A stretch of 5,420 bases of DNA from Chlorokybus atmophyticus (GCA_009103225.1 RHPI01002495.1:1-5420), one strand, 5' to 3'. Counted from the stretch's first letter, positions 189 to 5,420 are shown. Program-made: numbers and translations. Notes: generated by a model from the letters alone, not told the origin.

Positions 189-387
189 GTAAGCATAGGT
201 CATCCCATAATTATCCAGGTCCAGTGGTTCGATAATCACCAAGTCGTAGCTGGTCGCCATGCTTCCTTAGCTAGCCTGCAATGAAGACGGCGCCTCCCCA
301 AGCTATACCAACTTGTGTGTGCTATGCTAGCGCTCGTGAGGACCCATAACTTATTAAGAGATTGTACAGTAGCAATGATGCACACGC

Positions 388-428
388 ACAAGTGTGGCGC
401 CAGTAAGTGAAGAGCGATCTTACTGTAC
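388..428 (+). mobile_element. Eroded hAT right end (R0)
   Basis: ACAAGTG (388-394), CGCCA (398-402) and GCGA-TCT-TACTGTAC (414-428) are colinear with the right end ACAAGTG..CGCCA..GCGA-CC-CACTGTAT. Segment 421-444 matches junction 704-727 at 18/24 without gaps. Confidence 0.55.
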
Positions 429-436
429 TACACAAC

Positions 437-711
437 AGACAGTGTCTTATATAGTACACTAGTGAGTGCTAGTCAACACTAGTCAACACTAGTCAAAGTC
501 AAAGTCAATGGTTAAAGTCAAAGTCAAAGTTGACGTTGACCAAGCTTGACTATAACTCCCGTAACTCCCGTAACGGCCGTTGACCATAACTTCCATAACT
601 CCCGAAGATAAGTTGATCGTAGAAGTTTAGCTAAGGCGCCACCTACATAGGTACCTTTAACAAAGTGCAACAAGCACGCCAACTATAGAGACAATGCGCG
701 ACCCACTGTAT
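437..711 (+). mobile_element. Unit A: 275-bp non-autonomous (MITE-like) hAT derivative, left end fused directly to right end
   Basis: Starts AGACAGTGTCTTATATA; the 14 bp at 440-453 are identical to 723-736. It has a subterminal repeat array, then 663-711 matches the right end of the transposase-bearing unit (5364-5412), ending CACTGTAT. Confidence 0.78.
471..603 (+). repeat. Left subterminal repeat array L1 (AGTCAA x7, TTGAC x4, TAACTCCC-like x4-5)
   Basis: Read directly: AGTCAA at 471, 481, 491, 497, 503, 516, 522; TTGAC at 530, 536, 546, 580; TAACTCCC at 553, 562, 596 with variants at 571 and 587. Confidence 0.95.
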
Positions 712-717
712 TAAGCA
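663..717 (+). repeat. 55-bp direct repeat (hAT right end plus spacer), copy 1; copy 2 at 5364-5418
   Basis: 53/55 identical to 5364-5418; the mismatches are 670 A vs 5371 G and 697 C vs 5398 T. Confidence 0.97.
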
Positions 718-719
718 AT
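712..719 (+). repeat. 8-bp inter-element spacer / candidate target-site duplication TAAGCAAT
   Basis: Lies between the perfect inverted 8-mers CACTGTAT (704-711) and ATACAGTG (720-727). It is 7/8 identical to TAAGCAGT at 5413-5420. hAT elements make 8-bp TSDs. Confidence 0.6.
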
Positions 720-753
720 ATACAGTGTCTTATATATTATGCTACTAAGCACT

Positions 754-863
754 AGTCAACTCTAGTCAACTCTGGTCAAAGTCAACACTAGTCAATGGTC
801 AAAGTCAACGATCAAAGTCAAAGTTGACCATCGTTGACTATAACTCCCATAACTCCCGTAACT
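754..863 (+). repeat. Left subterminal repeat array L2 (RGTCAA x8, TTGACY x2, TAACTCCC x2)
   Basis: RGTCAA at 754, 764, 774, 780, 790, 797, 803, 816; TTGACC at 824; TTGACT at 834; TAACTCCC at 841 and 850. Same motif order as L1. Confidence 0.95.
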
Positions 864-1136
864 ATAAACATTAAGCTAATCATACCAACTACATGTAGGC
901 GCCGCCTATACATGTACTTTCATCAAGCTATAACATTTAAGAGCGGCGGCGGTGACGAGGTTACGAGTGAGAAGTGAGCTGGTTGCGTGGTTGTGGGAGT
1001 GTCAAAGAAATTTTGCATTTAATGCACACAACACACATACATACACATTGAGTGCGGATGATGGCTTGCGTGACTACACAATGCAGACAGGGACGCCTCT
1101 AGCCACGACAGCAGTGTTGGTCATGGCGGCATTGTG

Positions 1137-1197
1137 GGCGGCAACGGCTTTTTTCTATAGGTACTGTCCTGCACCTCCTCCCCTCATTGCCCACCCT
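1137..1197 (+). pseudogene. Possible remnant of the N-terminal BED zinc finger of the hAT transposase
   Basis: Removing one T from the T6 run gives GGNGFF(Y)RYCPAPPPLIAH, resembling the BED pattern F-C-K-Y-C...L-x-x-H. It is roughly 30/45 colinear with 2933-2975, just upstream of the unit C transposase remnant. Confidence 0.35.
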
Positions 1198-1298
1198 GTT
1201 TTAGCCAACACTACCGCATTGGCACTGTCTACAACTTTGCACAGCACTCTTGACTTGTTCTTCCAAGCTCTCTTCTCTGCCCCTGCCTTTGTGCACAG

Positions 1299-1800
1299 GT
1301 AAGTGGTGGTGCTGGAGTAGCACATGAGCATTGACACGCACGAAATCTATATTGTAATGTACAAACACAGTGTTTATCTCTGACACACATGCACAGAGTC
1401 AGTCCCACACACGCACACACGCGCACAGCAATACCAGCACCAGCACCAACACCAGTCACAACAACAGCAACAACACACGCACACGCACACGCACACGCAC
1501 ACTCGCACTCGCACTGGCATTCCACCAATCCCGTTCTGTTCCATGCACACACACCACTACCACCACAACAACACACGCACACTCGCATTCAGCCAGTCAA
1601 GCTCTTTTCTACGCAGACACATACACACACACGCGCACACACAACAGTTCATAACAAATAGTTGTTGTGAGCAATAATTACACACGCACGCACGCACACA
1701 CACACGCACACGCACACACAAACACTCCACCGCACACTCTGTCCGTCATGTAGTTGATTGCTCTTCTCTCGTTGTATGCTAACTGTGTCTTATTGAGCAG
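1299..1800 (+). other. Putative spliceosomal intron containing CA-rich microsatellites
   Basis: Consensus donor CAG|GTAAGT at 1299-1304, branch-like GCTAAC at 1778-1783 and acceptor CAG at 1798-1800. No transcript evidence. Confidence 0.4.
1383..1735 (+). repeat. Compound CA-rich microsatellite / low-complexity tract: (CA)n, (CACGCA)n, (CAA)n, (CAC)n
   Basis: Read directly, e.g. (CACGCA)4 at 1476-1499 and CACG/CA runs at ~1615-1640 and 1681-1720. Confidence 0.95.
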
Positions 1801-1859
1801 GCGTGCATATGGAGGTTGAAGTGAAGATGGGGTGTTCATCAGGCGTGCATACAGAGGTT
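1798..1859 (+). repeat. 20-bp direct repeat with 42-bp period
   Basis: CAGGCGTGCATATGGAGGTT (1798-1817) vs CAGGCGTGCATACAGAGGTT (1840-1859), 18/20 identical. Confidence 0.9.
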
Positions 1860-2323
1860 AGAATTGAAGCTGGCCGGCCGCACCGATTATGCTATGGTCG
1901 CCGGTCGCCTGCTCCAATAGGTAGACATCAATTCCATCGCAGCCAACCACTTATCGTGCTGGCTTCCTATACCGTGTAGGTGCATACATGCGTGGTGTAT
2001 CATGCATTTTGGCATCCCGTCACATGCACACGGATGCGTACCTATAGGAGCGCATACAAGCTGGCGGTTTAACACATATTAATGCACCATTGTGCACACA
2101 TACCAGCGCACCCATACATGTTTGCAAGCACATTACAACTACACGCATACATATCTAAGCATCAAGTTCAGTGCGGTTGTACTCACATGCGCACTGCCAC
2201 ATGTGCCCTTGCGTGCCTTGCTTATGCGCCCTTGCCATCATCCAAGAACATGCAAGAGTGCGCGCTAGCTAGGATGTGGCAGTAGTAGATGCTTGCGCGC
2301 AGCCTTTGTTGGCCTCTAATAAG

Positions 2324-2400
2324 CCCCCTTCCCCTCTCCCTCCCTCCCTCGCTCTCTCCCCCTCTCTCTCTGCCTCTCTCTCTCTCTCTCTCTCTCCCTC
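2324..2400 (+). repeat. 77-nt polypyrimidine tract including (CT)11
   Basis: All C/T except G at 2351 and 2372; (CT)11 at 2374-2395. Confidence 0.97.
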
Positions 2401-2726
2401 GCACGTGCATGCGCACACGCTCACACGCTTGCGCGCAGGTTTTCCTAATCGTGCAATTTAGTGGTTTTTGATGTCGGGGGCAACCGAAGAGTATAAAACA
2501 AAGGTGATGTTGCGTGTGCGATGTACTCTTGCGCGCTAGTGCTTTCTCTTGTGCTCTTTGCATGTTGTGCATATCAAGAACTAGTGTGCATATATGCGCC
2601 CTACCTCATACATGTGCTCACACTAGGGGAACAACAAGTGCAATAGCATGTCAACAACAAAGAGAAGTATGTTCCTATTGCAGTTCCACCTGTATGCGCC
2701 TCACAAAGTAACTTATATACCAAGCT

Positions 2727-2894
2727 AGTCAACACTAAAAAAGACTAGTCAACCCTAGTAAAAGTCAACTCTAGTCAACACTAGTCAACAATTAAAGTCA
2801 ACCCTAGTCAACCCTAGTTAATGGTCAAAGTCAAAGTTAACCGTAACTTTCGTAACTTCGTAAGTCTTGTTGATTGTAACTCCCATTGCGTAAC
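2727..2894 (+). repeat. Left subterminal repeat array L3 (RGTCAA x9 plus variants, GTAACT-type repeats)
   Basis: RGTCAA at 2727, 2747, 2763, 2773, 2783, 2796, 2806, 2823, 2829; GTAACTT/GTAACTCCC repeats at 2843-2884. Confidence 0.95.
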
Positions 2895-3574
2895 CGCCGC
2901 ACATGGTCCAAGTAACATTAACAAGCTGACTGTTCTATAAGCATACTATACCAGCAAACCTCATATGCTTAACCTTCAACAGGGGAGATTGGCGTGGGAG
3001 TGGCATCTTGTCAAGTTGTACCTGATGATGTGCGTGATCACTTTCGCCAGCTTGAACAAGCTTGAACAAGCTGCCATCATCACCAAGACCACCAAGTGCT
3101 CCAATACCGATGCTTTGAGCTAGCAAACTAGCATTGACTTAACGACTATAGGCATCACAATTGCATCACCTGCTGTTAACACCATGGATGCATTGATGAA
3201 GCTGTATGACGCACGTTCTATGGGCATGGCTTGCCATTGACGTTGGTTTGTAGTCCTCTGTTTAAGGCTGCTATCAAGGCCATAAGCAAGTAAAGTCTTT
3301 CATATATAGCACCTTCGTACAATAATGTGTGCACCGGCTTGCTAGACAAGGTCAAGGTAGGTGTGGATAGTAGGTTGGAAGAATATCGTAATACTGTCTT
3401 GAAGACAGGCTGCATAATATGCAGCCATGGTTGAACGGATGTACATAGCCGGCCTTTGTTGAATTTGCTGCAAGTTTCCCCTGATGGCGCTATCTTCTTG
3501 AAGCCATCATCATTGAGGGCATGACCAAATTTGCATCGTACATAGCAAGGCAGATCTTGGCCGCAATTGAAGAG

Positions 3575-3675
3575 GTGAGTGCAAGCAGTCTGTACGTGTG
3601 TACTGCCATGTTGTGTGCTTGTAGAGTGTGTTGTCCATGCTATGTCTGCTGGCTCATTTGCTTGTTGTAGAGCAG
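3575..3675 (+). other. Predicted intron 1 of the transposase (phase 0)
   Basis: GAG|GTGAGT ... GAGCAG|GTT. Removal joins AIEE to V.S..VVHVV, matching the conserved IEEVGxxNVVQVV motif, with a nearby 1-bp frameshift. Confidence 0.75.
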
Positions 3676-3909
3676 GTTGAATCAAAAAAGTAGTGCATGT
3701 GGTGATTAATAGTGCCAAAGCTTGCAAAGCCGCTGGCGCCATCATCAATAACACATACCCGCACAATAGCTGGAGCCCTTGCGCAGCTCATGTGCTTGAT
3801 CCATTGCTTGAGGACATTGATGAGCTACCATTCTTTGCTACCAATATCAAGAAAGGCAAGCATATGGTGACCTTTATTGCAAACCACCATAAGAGCTTAG
3901 CCATTTGAG

Positions 3910-4012
3910 GTATGATGTGCATTTGTTCTTATGCAATGCTGCATGCATGCATACTTGTGTGTAGCTTATTGCATGTTGCTCACTAATATTATGTGCTGAC
4001 AATGAGTTAAAG
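3910..4012 (+). other. Predicted intron 2 of the transposase (acceptor uncertain: 4006 or 4012)
   Basis: Donor G|GTATGA at 3910 follows NHHKSLAI. The interior is TGCA/CATG-rich and non-coding, with branch-like GCTGAC at 3995-4000. Coding similarity resumes at LLKPSKTRF (4025). Confidence 0.65.
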
Positions 4013-4289
4013 ACTTTTAAAACTCTGCTCAAGCCAAGTAAGACCAGGTTCGCATCAGCATTATGCTGCAAAGACTACTGGAGGTTAAAGGAGAGCTTGC
4101 CAAGACGGTTGTGGATGATCCTTGGACTGCTTGGGCAGCCCAATCAGGCGTACATCAACGCGGGGCAGAGCGGGCAATTGAAATCGTGTTGTCTTCACAC
4201 TTTTAAAAGGCAGGTTGGGCAGATAATTGTTGCACTCGAGCACCTCATCCAAATTATGCAGCTAGTTGATGGCAATCATCCAACCATGG

Positions 4290-4368
4290 GTATGCTATAT
4301 TCAACTTATAATGAGCTCTGTATCACTTATGTTGACAGCACTATTGACACTCGCGTGTCTCTCTGTAA
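4290..4368 (+). other. Predicted intron 3 of the transposase (phase 1; acceptor apparently mutated AG>AA)
   Basis: ATG G|GTATGC ... CTCTGTAA|GC CAG CTG TAT. Removal restores PTMG-QLYQRM, matching the hAT pattern PTMGxLYxxM. Confidence 0.6.
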
Positions 4369-5296
4369 GCCAGCTGTATCAGCGGATGTTGGCTGCGCGT
4401 GAAACGCTGAAAGCGTCAGTCTTGCCAACCGCGCTGCTGCATACTATCTCCGATTGCTTGAAAGTGCGCTTCAAGATAATGAAGACTAATTTGCTGTGTG
4501 CGGGCTTCATGCTCGACCCCGAGTTCGCCTCATGAACCAGCACGAGCAAAAGGACGTCATGCATGGGTTTTGCAACATTGTTGAGCGAATGTTTCCCAAC
4601 ACAGATGAAGTGCAGCTGAATCTGCAGTTGACGCAATACCGCAGTAGACATGGCCTGTTGTGGCTAAGGGTTCCGCAATGTCTATGCTGGCACATCAGTG
4701 GTGGCTTCAATTTGACGGTAGCGTGCCTCAGTTGCAGCGCATAGCAGTGCGTGTGCTTGCTTAGGTCACTGTGGCATCATCATGCGAGCGCAACTGCAAT
4801 ACGCATCACTTTATCCATAGCAAGAACCGTAACAAGCTGCGAGCATTGAGAGCGCATGACCTTTTGTGGGTGTTCAACATCCTTTTCCTTCAGACCATCT
4901 TTGATGTTGCATATGAGGAGCAGTTTGCAGCTTGGGATCCTGTGTTATTGGATGATAAGAGTAGTGACGATGATGCTTGATTTAATGATGATGTGGTTGA
5001 AGTGTTAGCATTTGACACTAAGCAACGATGACTATGTGCTAGCATTAGCCCAGTGGGCTTTGAGTATAGAGATGTGTAGCAATTGCTGTGCTTGCTTGTT
5101 TTGTTTGTATAAGCAGCTGAGGAGATGTCAGTCATGTGCTGCAACATGTTGTGACATGCATGTATTGGCCATATTGGTAAAAAGCATGTGAAGTATAATA
5201 CCCGTATCACTTGCCCGCCGTGTTCAATACCGTGTGTATATATTGCGCTACCATGCGTGTTGCCGCATTTTCAATCAGACTTGGTTACAGCTGTTG

Positions 5297-5412
5297 AGAA
5301 CTAGTGATGTGCATAGTGTGTGTGTATTTGCCTCGTACATACAAGTGTGCACACACTAAGGACAAGTGCAGCAAGCACGCCAACTATAGAGACAATGTGC
5401 GACCCACTGTAT
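5297..5412 (+). mobile_element. hAT right end of unit C (R2)
   Basis: Homologous to 2577-2695 and 663-711. The terminal CACTGTAT is the perfect reverse complement of ATACAGTG (720-727). Confidence 0.8.
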
Positions 5413-5420
5413 TAAGCAGT

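Follow-up and report, generated by a model that had tools for sequence, protein, structure and literature searches.

A head-to-tail cluster of hAT family members with a possible composite unit in Chlorokybus atmophyticus

The window analysed here, a 5,420-bp stretch of the Chlorokybus atmophyticus genome (GCA_009103225.1, RHPI01002495.1:1-5420), carries members of one hAT transposon family arranged head to tail. Self-comparison of the window revealed that left-end (L) and right-end (R) modules of this family alternate along the + strand in the order L-R-L-R-L-R, with the three left modules beginning at 437, 720 and 2703 and the three right modules finishing at 711, 2695 and 5412. These modules delimit three units, which we designated A (275 bp), B (1976 bp) and C (2710 bp), and both the unit sizes (275 bp, about 2 kb and about 2.7 kb) and the shared head-to-tail orientation given in a preliminary description of the locus held up. 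Insertion of one unit inside another was rejected, because the order on the one strand is L-R-L-R-L-R and not L-L-R-R. We favour, tentatively and at somewhat less than even odds, a reading of the locus as a cluster of insertions at a single site. B and C would be an older fused dimer, referred to here as composite X (720-5412, + strand, 4693 bp), which last moved as a unit and came to lie beside A, a miniature inverted-repeat transposable element (MITE), in the same 8-bp target. From the features set out below we infer the order of these events, the movement of X as a unit and the re-use of a target site as opposed to its recombinational duplication.

Termini, junctions and spacers of the three units

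The junctions between units are composed of a right terminus, a short spacer and a left terminus. At J1 (704-727) these are CACTGTAT, the spacer TAAGCAAT (S1, 712-719) and ATACAGTG, with 0 mismatches to the palindromic junction pattern, for which 0.09 matches at three or fewer mismatches are expected per shuffled window. J2 (2687-2710) reads CACCTGTAT, then GCGCCTC (S2, 2696-2702), then ACAAAGTA; placed in register with J1, its spacer is 7 bp long and not the 5 bp (GCGCC) that had been described. Both J1 and J2 join a right end to a left end on the + strand in the same orientation. J3 (5405-5420) holds a right end and a spacer only, CACTGTAT followed by TAAGCAGT (S3, 5413-5420), and the eighth base of that spacer is the last base of the window. 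Ahead of A lies J0 (421-444), which reads TACTGTAC, TACACAAC (S0, 429-436) and AGACAGTG and has 3 mismatches to the pattern. The 16 nucleotides (nt) ahead of the left terminus of A match the 16 nt ahead of that of B (704-719) at 11/16 positions (p about 3e-4), and it is from this positional match that J0 draws its one firm support. The preliminary description had counted four junctions of one design; J1, J2 and J3 are secure, and J0 is suggestive as judged from its sequence. The spacers measure 8 bp at J0, 8 bp at J1, 7 bp at J2, beside a terminus with a 1-bp insertion, and at least 8 bp at J3. An 8-bp target-site duplication is established for the hAT superfamily.

The TAT/ATA bases at the very ends belong to the element, because they are kept at J2 beside an unrelated spacer. 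It follows that the family termini are the 8-bp inverted repeat ATACAGTG/CACTGTAT, found together with subterminal repeats, and that the spacers have the length of an 8-bp hAT target duplication. A terminus that starts with ATA is atypical of hAT elements. CAGTG was considered as the true terminus and rejected: it would imply a 14-bp spacer, with flanking 8-mers that match at only 1-2/8 positions, and it is also ruled out by the persistence of the TAT/A-A bases at J2.

In every left module the terminus is accompanied by a TTATATA box and by AGTCAA copies in an oriented array, and 21 of the 22 AGTCAA copies in the window fall within the three left modules. In the self-comparison, 422-574 matched 705-862 (82%, E 3e-35) and 724-821 matched 2707-2801 (74%, E 8e-14), linking the left ends of A and B and those of B and C. 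Element A (437-711, + strand, termini AGACAGTG and CACTGTAT) is a MITE-like deletion derivative. Over 437-662 it is 81% identical to the left part of B (720-935), and over 663-711 it is 96% identical to the right end of C (5364-5412), a match that extends over 55 bp (663-717 versus 5364-5418). Within A, the AGTCAA array is followed by GTTGAC copies at 529-584; since the array faces these inverted copies, A as single-stranded DNA folds better than its shuffles (-35.3 kcal/mol, z = -3.7). The left module of B (720-935, + strand) combines the perfect terminus ATACAGTG with an AGTCAA array and TAACTCCC repeats, and that of C (2703-2900, + strand) combines the mutated terminus ACAAAGTA (5/8) with the longest AGTCAA array, of 8 copies. 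The right module of B (2562-2695, + strand) is of the autonomous, C-like type and decayed, ending in CACCTGTAT with a 1-bp insertion in the inverted repeat, and the right module of C (5296-5412, + strand) ends in the perfect CACTGTAT. Neither of these two right ends has AGTCAA/GTTGAC-type motifs, so the subterminal array is specific to the left end in the long members. B retains a left module of about 216 bp and a right module of about 134 bp around 1.6 kb of unrelated DNA.

Two further homologies to the right end had been proposed, for 2577-2695 and for 388-428. The first was borne out, as 2562-2666 of B aligned with 5304-5395 of C at a local score of 61, compared with 17.6 +/- 3.1 for shuffles (z = 14, 0/2000). 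The second was not significant: neither 330-428 nor 380-428 gave a robust match to the right end (z = 2.1, 88/2000 shuffles), p ranged from 0.006 to 0.25 with the gap costs, and 2-33% of other windows scored equally. For 330-428, extended homology fell short of significance against all right ends, under several scoring schemes and two null models. The segment at 380-428 (+ strand), which ends in TACTGTAC (6/8 to CACTGTAT), is a possible right-end remnant, Z, of an earlier and heavily decayed copy. A likeness of 893-935 in B and 630-660 in A to 2883-2935 in C is plausible by eye and not significant (z = 1.2).

The family ends are repetitive and the window stops exactly at a junction, and both features could be produced by an assembly in which copies from different loci had been chained or mis-ordered via their common ends. 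A false join would, however, be expected within the shared repeat and would not yield precise junctions of right end, 8-bp spacer and left end. The three junctions are also unlike one another in sequence and decay, and J2 is anchored on both sides by the unique interiors of B and C. We therefore regard an assembly artefact as quite improbable.

We next compared the flanking 8-mers for each pairing of a left with a right terminus, with pairings beyond the 7/8 and 5/8 cases counted by hand. When 720 is paired with 5412, the outer ends of X, S1 and S3 agree at 7/8 positions (chance 4e-4), and when 437 is paired with 711, the ends of A, S0 and S1 agree at 5/8 (chance of 5/8 or better 0.027). All other pairings reach 4/8 at most: 1/8 for B alone (S1/S2), 3/8 for C alone (S2/S3) and 4/8 for 437 with 5412. 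S1 is the proposed common copy of the 8-bp target between A and the composite. S2 is unrelated to S0, S1 and S3; it matches S1 at 2/8 positions at most, which has P = 0.011 even for the same target decayed to 70% identity, and this indicates that not every junction was made at this site.

Unequal decay of the ends and the proposed composite

The ends of B and C have decayed asymmetrically. Of their terminal 8-mers, the outer ones (left end of B, right end of C) are intact at 8/8, the inner left end of C retains 5/8 and the inner right end of B has a 1-bp insertion. In three-way alignments, the left modules (155 columns) showed 9 unique differences in A, 16 in B and 31 in C, and the right modules (58 columns) showed 4 in A, 14 in B and 3 in C. 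In both B and C the inner end is about 4 times more diverged than the outer one, so that B looks young at its left end and old at its right end, and C the other way round. Divergence from end to end is unequal in both (Fisher p = 0.014 for B and 0.010 for C) and even in A (p = 0.75). The two sides also conflict in their groupings, with left modules placing A with B and right modules placing A with C. Because neutral decay in situ predicts equal ends, this asymmetry is unexpected for two separate in-place insertions, and the asymmetry together with the groupings is expected for a fused pair that was still moving on its outer ends.

These results bear directly on two simpler explanations. If A, B and C had each inserted here separately, through local hopping or a preference for the family's own ends, and had then decayed in place, the likeness of the spacers would be due to chance or target preference. 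Consistent with such a plain nest, which is also how the preliminary description read the locus, a left and a right module can be recognised in each of the three units, all are oriented alike, and the spacers have target-duplication length. The flanking 8-mers of B and of C are nevertheless unmatched, and the equal end divergence that it predicts is rejected for both (p about 0.01 each), so we consider this explanation improbable. The preliminary description had also suggested a concatemer amplified from joined or circular forms, that is, excision products multiplied in a rolling-circle-like manner and then reinserted. Head-to-tail order with short spacers would suit this origin, and Bari1 arrays have been suggested to arise by rolling-circle replication (PMC5932611). 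A concatemer should however consist of like units, and the units here are not copies of one another: they differ in content, nothing is shared between the interiors of B and C, and the groupings by left ends and by right ends conflict. With spacers of exact target-duplication length, one of them unrelated to the rest, we give this origin hardly any credence.

The arrangement that we favour, same-site insertion beside a fused dimer, could have arisen as follows. An hAT insertion duplicates its 8-bp target and keeps it on both sides of the new copy, where it stays open to further hits; a subsequent insertion into either target copy produces a head-to-tail pair with exactly one target copy between the ends. 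B, a non-autonomous unit with 1.6 kb of foreign filler, and C, which carries a dead transposase copy, would have been fused at another site with the target GCGCCTC. The inner ends of X would have decayed after the fusion, leaving the perfect repeat only at the left of B and the right of C. As only these outer ends keep the perfect repeat, a transposase acting in trans could have mobilised the 4.7 kb of X only as one piece, like the maize macrotransposon. X would then have landed in the same 8-bp target (T) as MITE A, and possibly as the older copy Z. The present order would accordingly be a possible Z remnant, T, A, T, X and T, with T close to TAAGCAAT. Spacer similarity (S0/S1 5/8, S1/S3 7/8) suggests that Z inserted first, then A, then X, and the locus would on this reading record two events here, perhaps three, plus one imported fused dimer, rather than four events. 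With its perfect outer 8-bp inverted repeats, functional-looking outer ends and disabled inner ends, X has the make-up that a composite element would be predicted to have, and the end and spacer sequences at this one locus are compatible with its having moved as a unit. The landing pad envisaged in the preliminary description, at which family members insert repeatedly, is consistent with the 7/8 match of the J1 and J3 spacers and weakly with J0 (5/8); it does not extend to the unrelated spacer between B and C, which are better read as one composite.

A different history, which we judge unlikely though still credible, is the expansion of an array. Unequal exchange or segmental duplication would have multiplied one ancestral head-to-tail dimer at intervals of about 4.7 kb, and deletions and insertions would have reshaped the interiors of its units afterwards. 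A would then represent a B+C unit that has collapsed, and more of the array would lie past the window. Segments 663-719 and 5364-5420, which lie 4701 bp apart, are indeed 96% identical with the spacer included, and J0 resembles J1 across the right terminus, spacer and left end (11/16). A is B-like on its left and C-like on its right, as a deletion derivative of a B+C unit would be. There is also precedent in a hobo dimer whose expansion produced 13-19 copies that share one 8-nt motif (PMC5932611), and the window stops right after a spacer, where a repeat-limited contig would presumably break. A single duplication, however, predicts equal identities on the two sides of A, and these are 81-85% to B on the left versus 96% to C on the right. 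Array expansion also leaves unexplained the far stronger decay at the inner than at the outer ends of B and C, and one full period only is visible. One unit is a MITE, another carries filler and the third a transposase copy, and this difference in structure supports double insertion over duplication.

Several points weigh against same-site insertion as well. The S1/S3 match is confounded, being the tail of the 55-bp stretch of 96% identity, which duplication or gene conversion would produce equally well. The S0/S1 agreement (5/8) and the Z remnant are weak. As there are three copies only, the counts of unique differences mix age with subfamily structure. The 96% identity of the A and C right ends is somewhat unexpected for independent members, as all other pairwise identities in the family are lower, at 72-85%; tested against the comparison of A and B over 226 bp, the difference has Fisher p = 0.009, and against the one over 138 bp it has p = 0.07. 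Finally, the target consensus of Ac and hobo is nTnnnnAn, which TAAGCAAT does not appear to match.

Transposase pseudogene, filler DNA and left flank

Between its two modules, C contains a decayed hAT transposase pseudogene with introns (2979-5022, + strand), recognised by its Pfam DUF659 match and by tblastn. Protein searches with the pseudogene used stop-free pieces only. A stop-free piece of 75 amino acids (aa; 3681-3905) matched DUF659 (PF04937) with E 8.8e-12, and the match of a window piece to Dimer_Tnp_hAT was weak (E 0.09). The closest relative among 1.84 billion representative proteins was P0001, a 606-aa protein of C. atmophyticus itself (EukProt EP00898, JGI Chlat1 Chrsp86S08005), which is 71% identical over the 75-aa piece. 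P0001 has a DUF659 domain (1e-44); its hAT dimerisation and zf-BED matches do not reach the cut-offs set by Pfam. Its residues 57-576 are colinear with 2979-4941 of the window in segments 32-70% identical (tblastn), and similarity in the tail continues to about 5022. The hAT assignment made in the preliminary description was thus confirmed by the DUF659 match and the colinear alignment of P0001, and sequence similarity places the elements within the hAT superfamily.

The pseudogene is interrupted by in-frame stops at 3207, 3291, 3432, 3906, 4204 and 4762, among others, and by frame changes near 3504, 4058, 4205, 4525 and 4645. Its conserved DGW motif reads H-G-stop, and a search with P0001 found no counterpart of the N-terminal BED-finger exon anywhere in the window. 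C is therefore an hAT family member with a dead transposase gene and no possible source of transposase. Separately, we observed that a segment typical of hAT elements, with a WW motif ahead of the dimerisation domain, is retained at 4648-4761 of the pseudogene, and that the gene model of P0001 is without this WW segment (about residues 495-510). The JGI model may have part of a conserved exon spliced out.

Wider searches returned distant relatives. The 71-aa piece from the C-terminus gave no candidate in a word-index protein search, whose length window excluded full-length relatives. The conserved 26-nt core of the right end had 0 exact matches in JGI metagenome contigs, a result that is uninformative on the Chlorokybus genome. 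A metagenome scan guided by P0001 found 121 distant relatives, mostly intronless, whose best segments are mostly 35-47% identical, with up to 76% over short C-terminal pieces. The AGTCAA array was present in none of these 121 relatives, and when 21 metagenome loci were screened for 12-nt inverted repeats with an 8-bp duplication, one doubtful pair was found. One set of JGI contigs (L001-L047, from Ga0116226-31, Ga0209208 and Ga0209611; up to 115 kb) carries dozens of apparently intronless transposase relatives, with full-length matches to the transposase mostly 36-42% identical; these may belong to a eukaryotic hAT lineage that has been domesticated or that has different ends.

The interior of B (936-2561, 1.6 kb) is unrelated to the family: it gave no self-match to family sequence, no Pfam match and no tblastn match to P0001. 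It is rich in microsatellites: CA-rich arrays, (CACACG)n among them, occur at 1433-1737, and a CT-rich tract spans 2331-2400. The possibility that it represents a decayed transposase, or the N-terminal exon missing from C, was rejected on the lack of a tblastn match to P0001. The filler may have come from captured host DNA or from another element, or from neither. The claim that there is no host DNA between the members consequently stands at the junctions and not necessarily within B, whose interior could be captured or host DNA. An open frame of 116 aa lies at 952-1299 of the filler and ends at a donor-like GTAAGT.

The left flank (1-379) has no demonstrable homology to the family. It gave no self-match to the elements and nothing significant in Pfam, where it returned only a chance-level match to PDCD7 (E 0.11). 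On the + strand, positions 3 to 185 form an open frame, shortly after which comes a donor-like GTAAGC (189-194). The start of the window may be a host exon and the beginning of an intron, and the transposon cluster would then possibly lie inside an intron of a host gene. The window as a whole has a G+C content of 46.8% and contains introns of spliceosomal type, which mark it as eukaryotic DNA, and Rfam and tRNA scans of the window found nothing.

Relation to known tandem and composite transposons

The preliminary description had taken a tandem arrangement to be unusual for hAT elements. It is less so than was assumed, as hobo tandems with an 8-nt duplication have already been described (PMC5932611). 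McGurk and Barbash (2018) showed double insertion at one target for P elements in Drosophila melanogaster, and reported that tandems of hobo, an hAT element, have an identical 8-nt motif between the inverted repeats and that 24 of 36 hobo dimers have inner-end deletions (PMC5932611). In the same work, a structural difference between the units of jockey dimers was used to argue for double insertion over duplication (PMC5932611). The locus described here resembles the hobo and P tandems in its head-to-tail order, in the single 8-nt target copy between repeats and in its damaged inner ends, which are frequent in those tandems. It differs from them in having unequal partners, a 275-bp MITE and a 4.7-kb composite, and one unrelated spacer of 7 bp. 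Unlike the Drosophila cases, it belongs to a streptophyte alga, all of its copies are old and dead, and it is known from one sequence.

The proposed movement of X has a parallel in the maize Ac/Ds macrotransposon, in which two elements are mobilised together through their outer ends (Huang and Dooner, as cited in PMC3260210). So far as that citation describes it, the likeness lies in two members and their intervening DNA seemingly acting as one unit, bordered by one left and one right end, with a single flanking duplication, here at 7/8. In the maize case, again as cited there, transposition was demonstrated genetically for elements that lie far apart, whereas B and C abut and their movement as a unit would be deduced from sequence. 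Ds-type non-autonomous elements with unrelated internal DNA (PMC3260210) resemble B, and A is comparable to Ds1; unlike such elements, the B filler contains no identified gene fragment. The DUF659 match is shared with green-plant hAT transposases of the DUF659 type (PF04937 with PF05699 and zf-BED), but the copy here is broken and is without the BED-finger exon. Coral CMITE arrays (piggyBac-related; PMC2872659) are likewise tandem MITEs of a cut-and-paste family. Their units and gaps are near-identical and have been attributed to replication slippage (PMC2872659), in contrast to the heterogeneous units of the present locus.

The arrangement is real and of a kind already described, and it reveals no new mechanism. 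Its value is descriptive unless genome-wide counts prove tandem copies to be strongly over-represented. The locus fixes the termini of the family (ATACAGTG/CACTGTAT, 8 bp), which is useful for annotating Chlorokybus MITEs of this family. A more general hypothesis, which we hold to be doubtful, is that family members home to ends of their own family: a transposase bound on resident AGTCAA arrays would capture the adjacent regenerated target, copies would pile up head to tail, and fused dimers with decayed inner ends would spread as larger non-autonomous units. If true, own-end homing would be a route by which new families of composite transposons arise from tandem insertion in a streptophyte that diverged early. 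Head-to-tail transposon dimers have been proposed as the seed of transposon-derived satellite DNA and of composites that carry foreign DNA. With a MITE beside a fused dimer that was seemingly frozen into a single mobile unit by inner-end decay, this locus would add an example that is fixed, old and heterogeneous, from an alga placed close to the base of the lineage leading to land plants.

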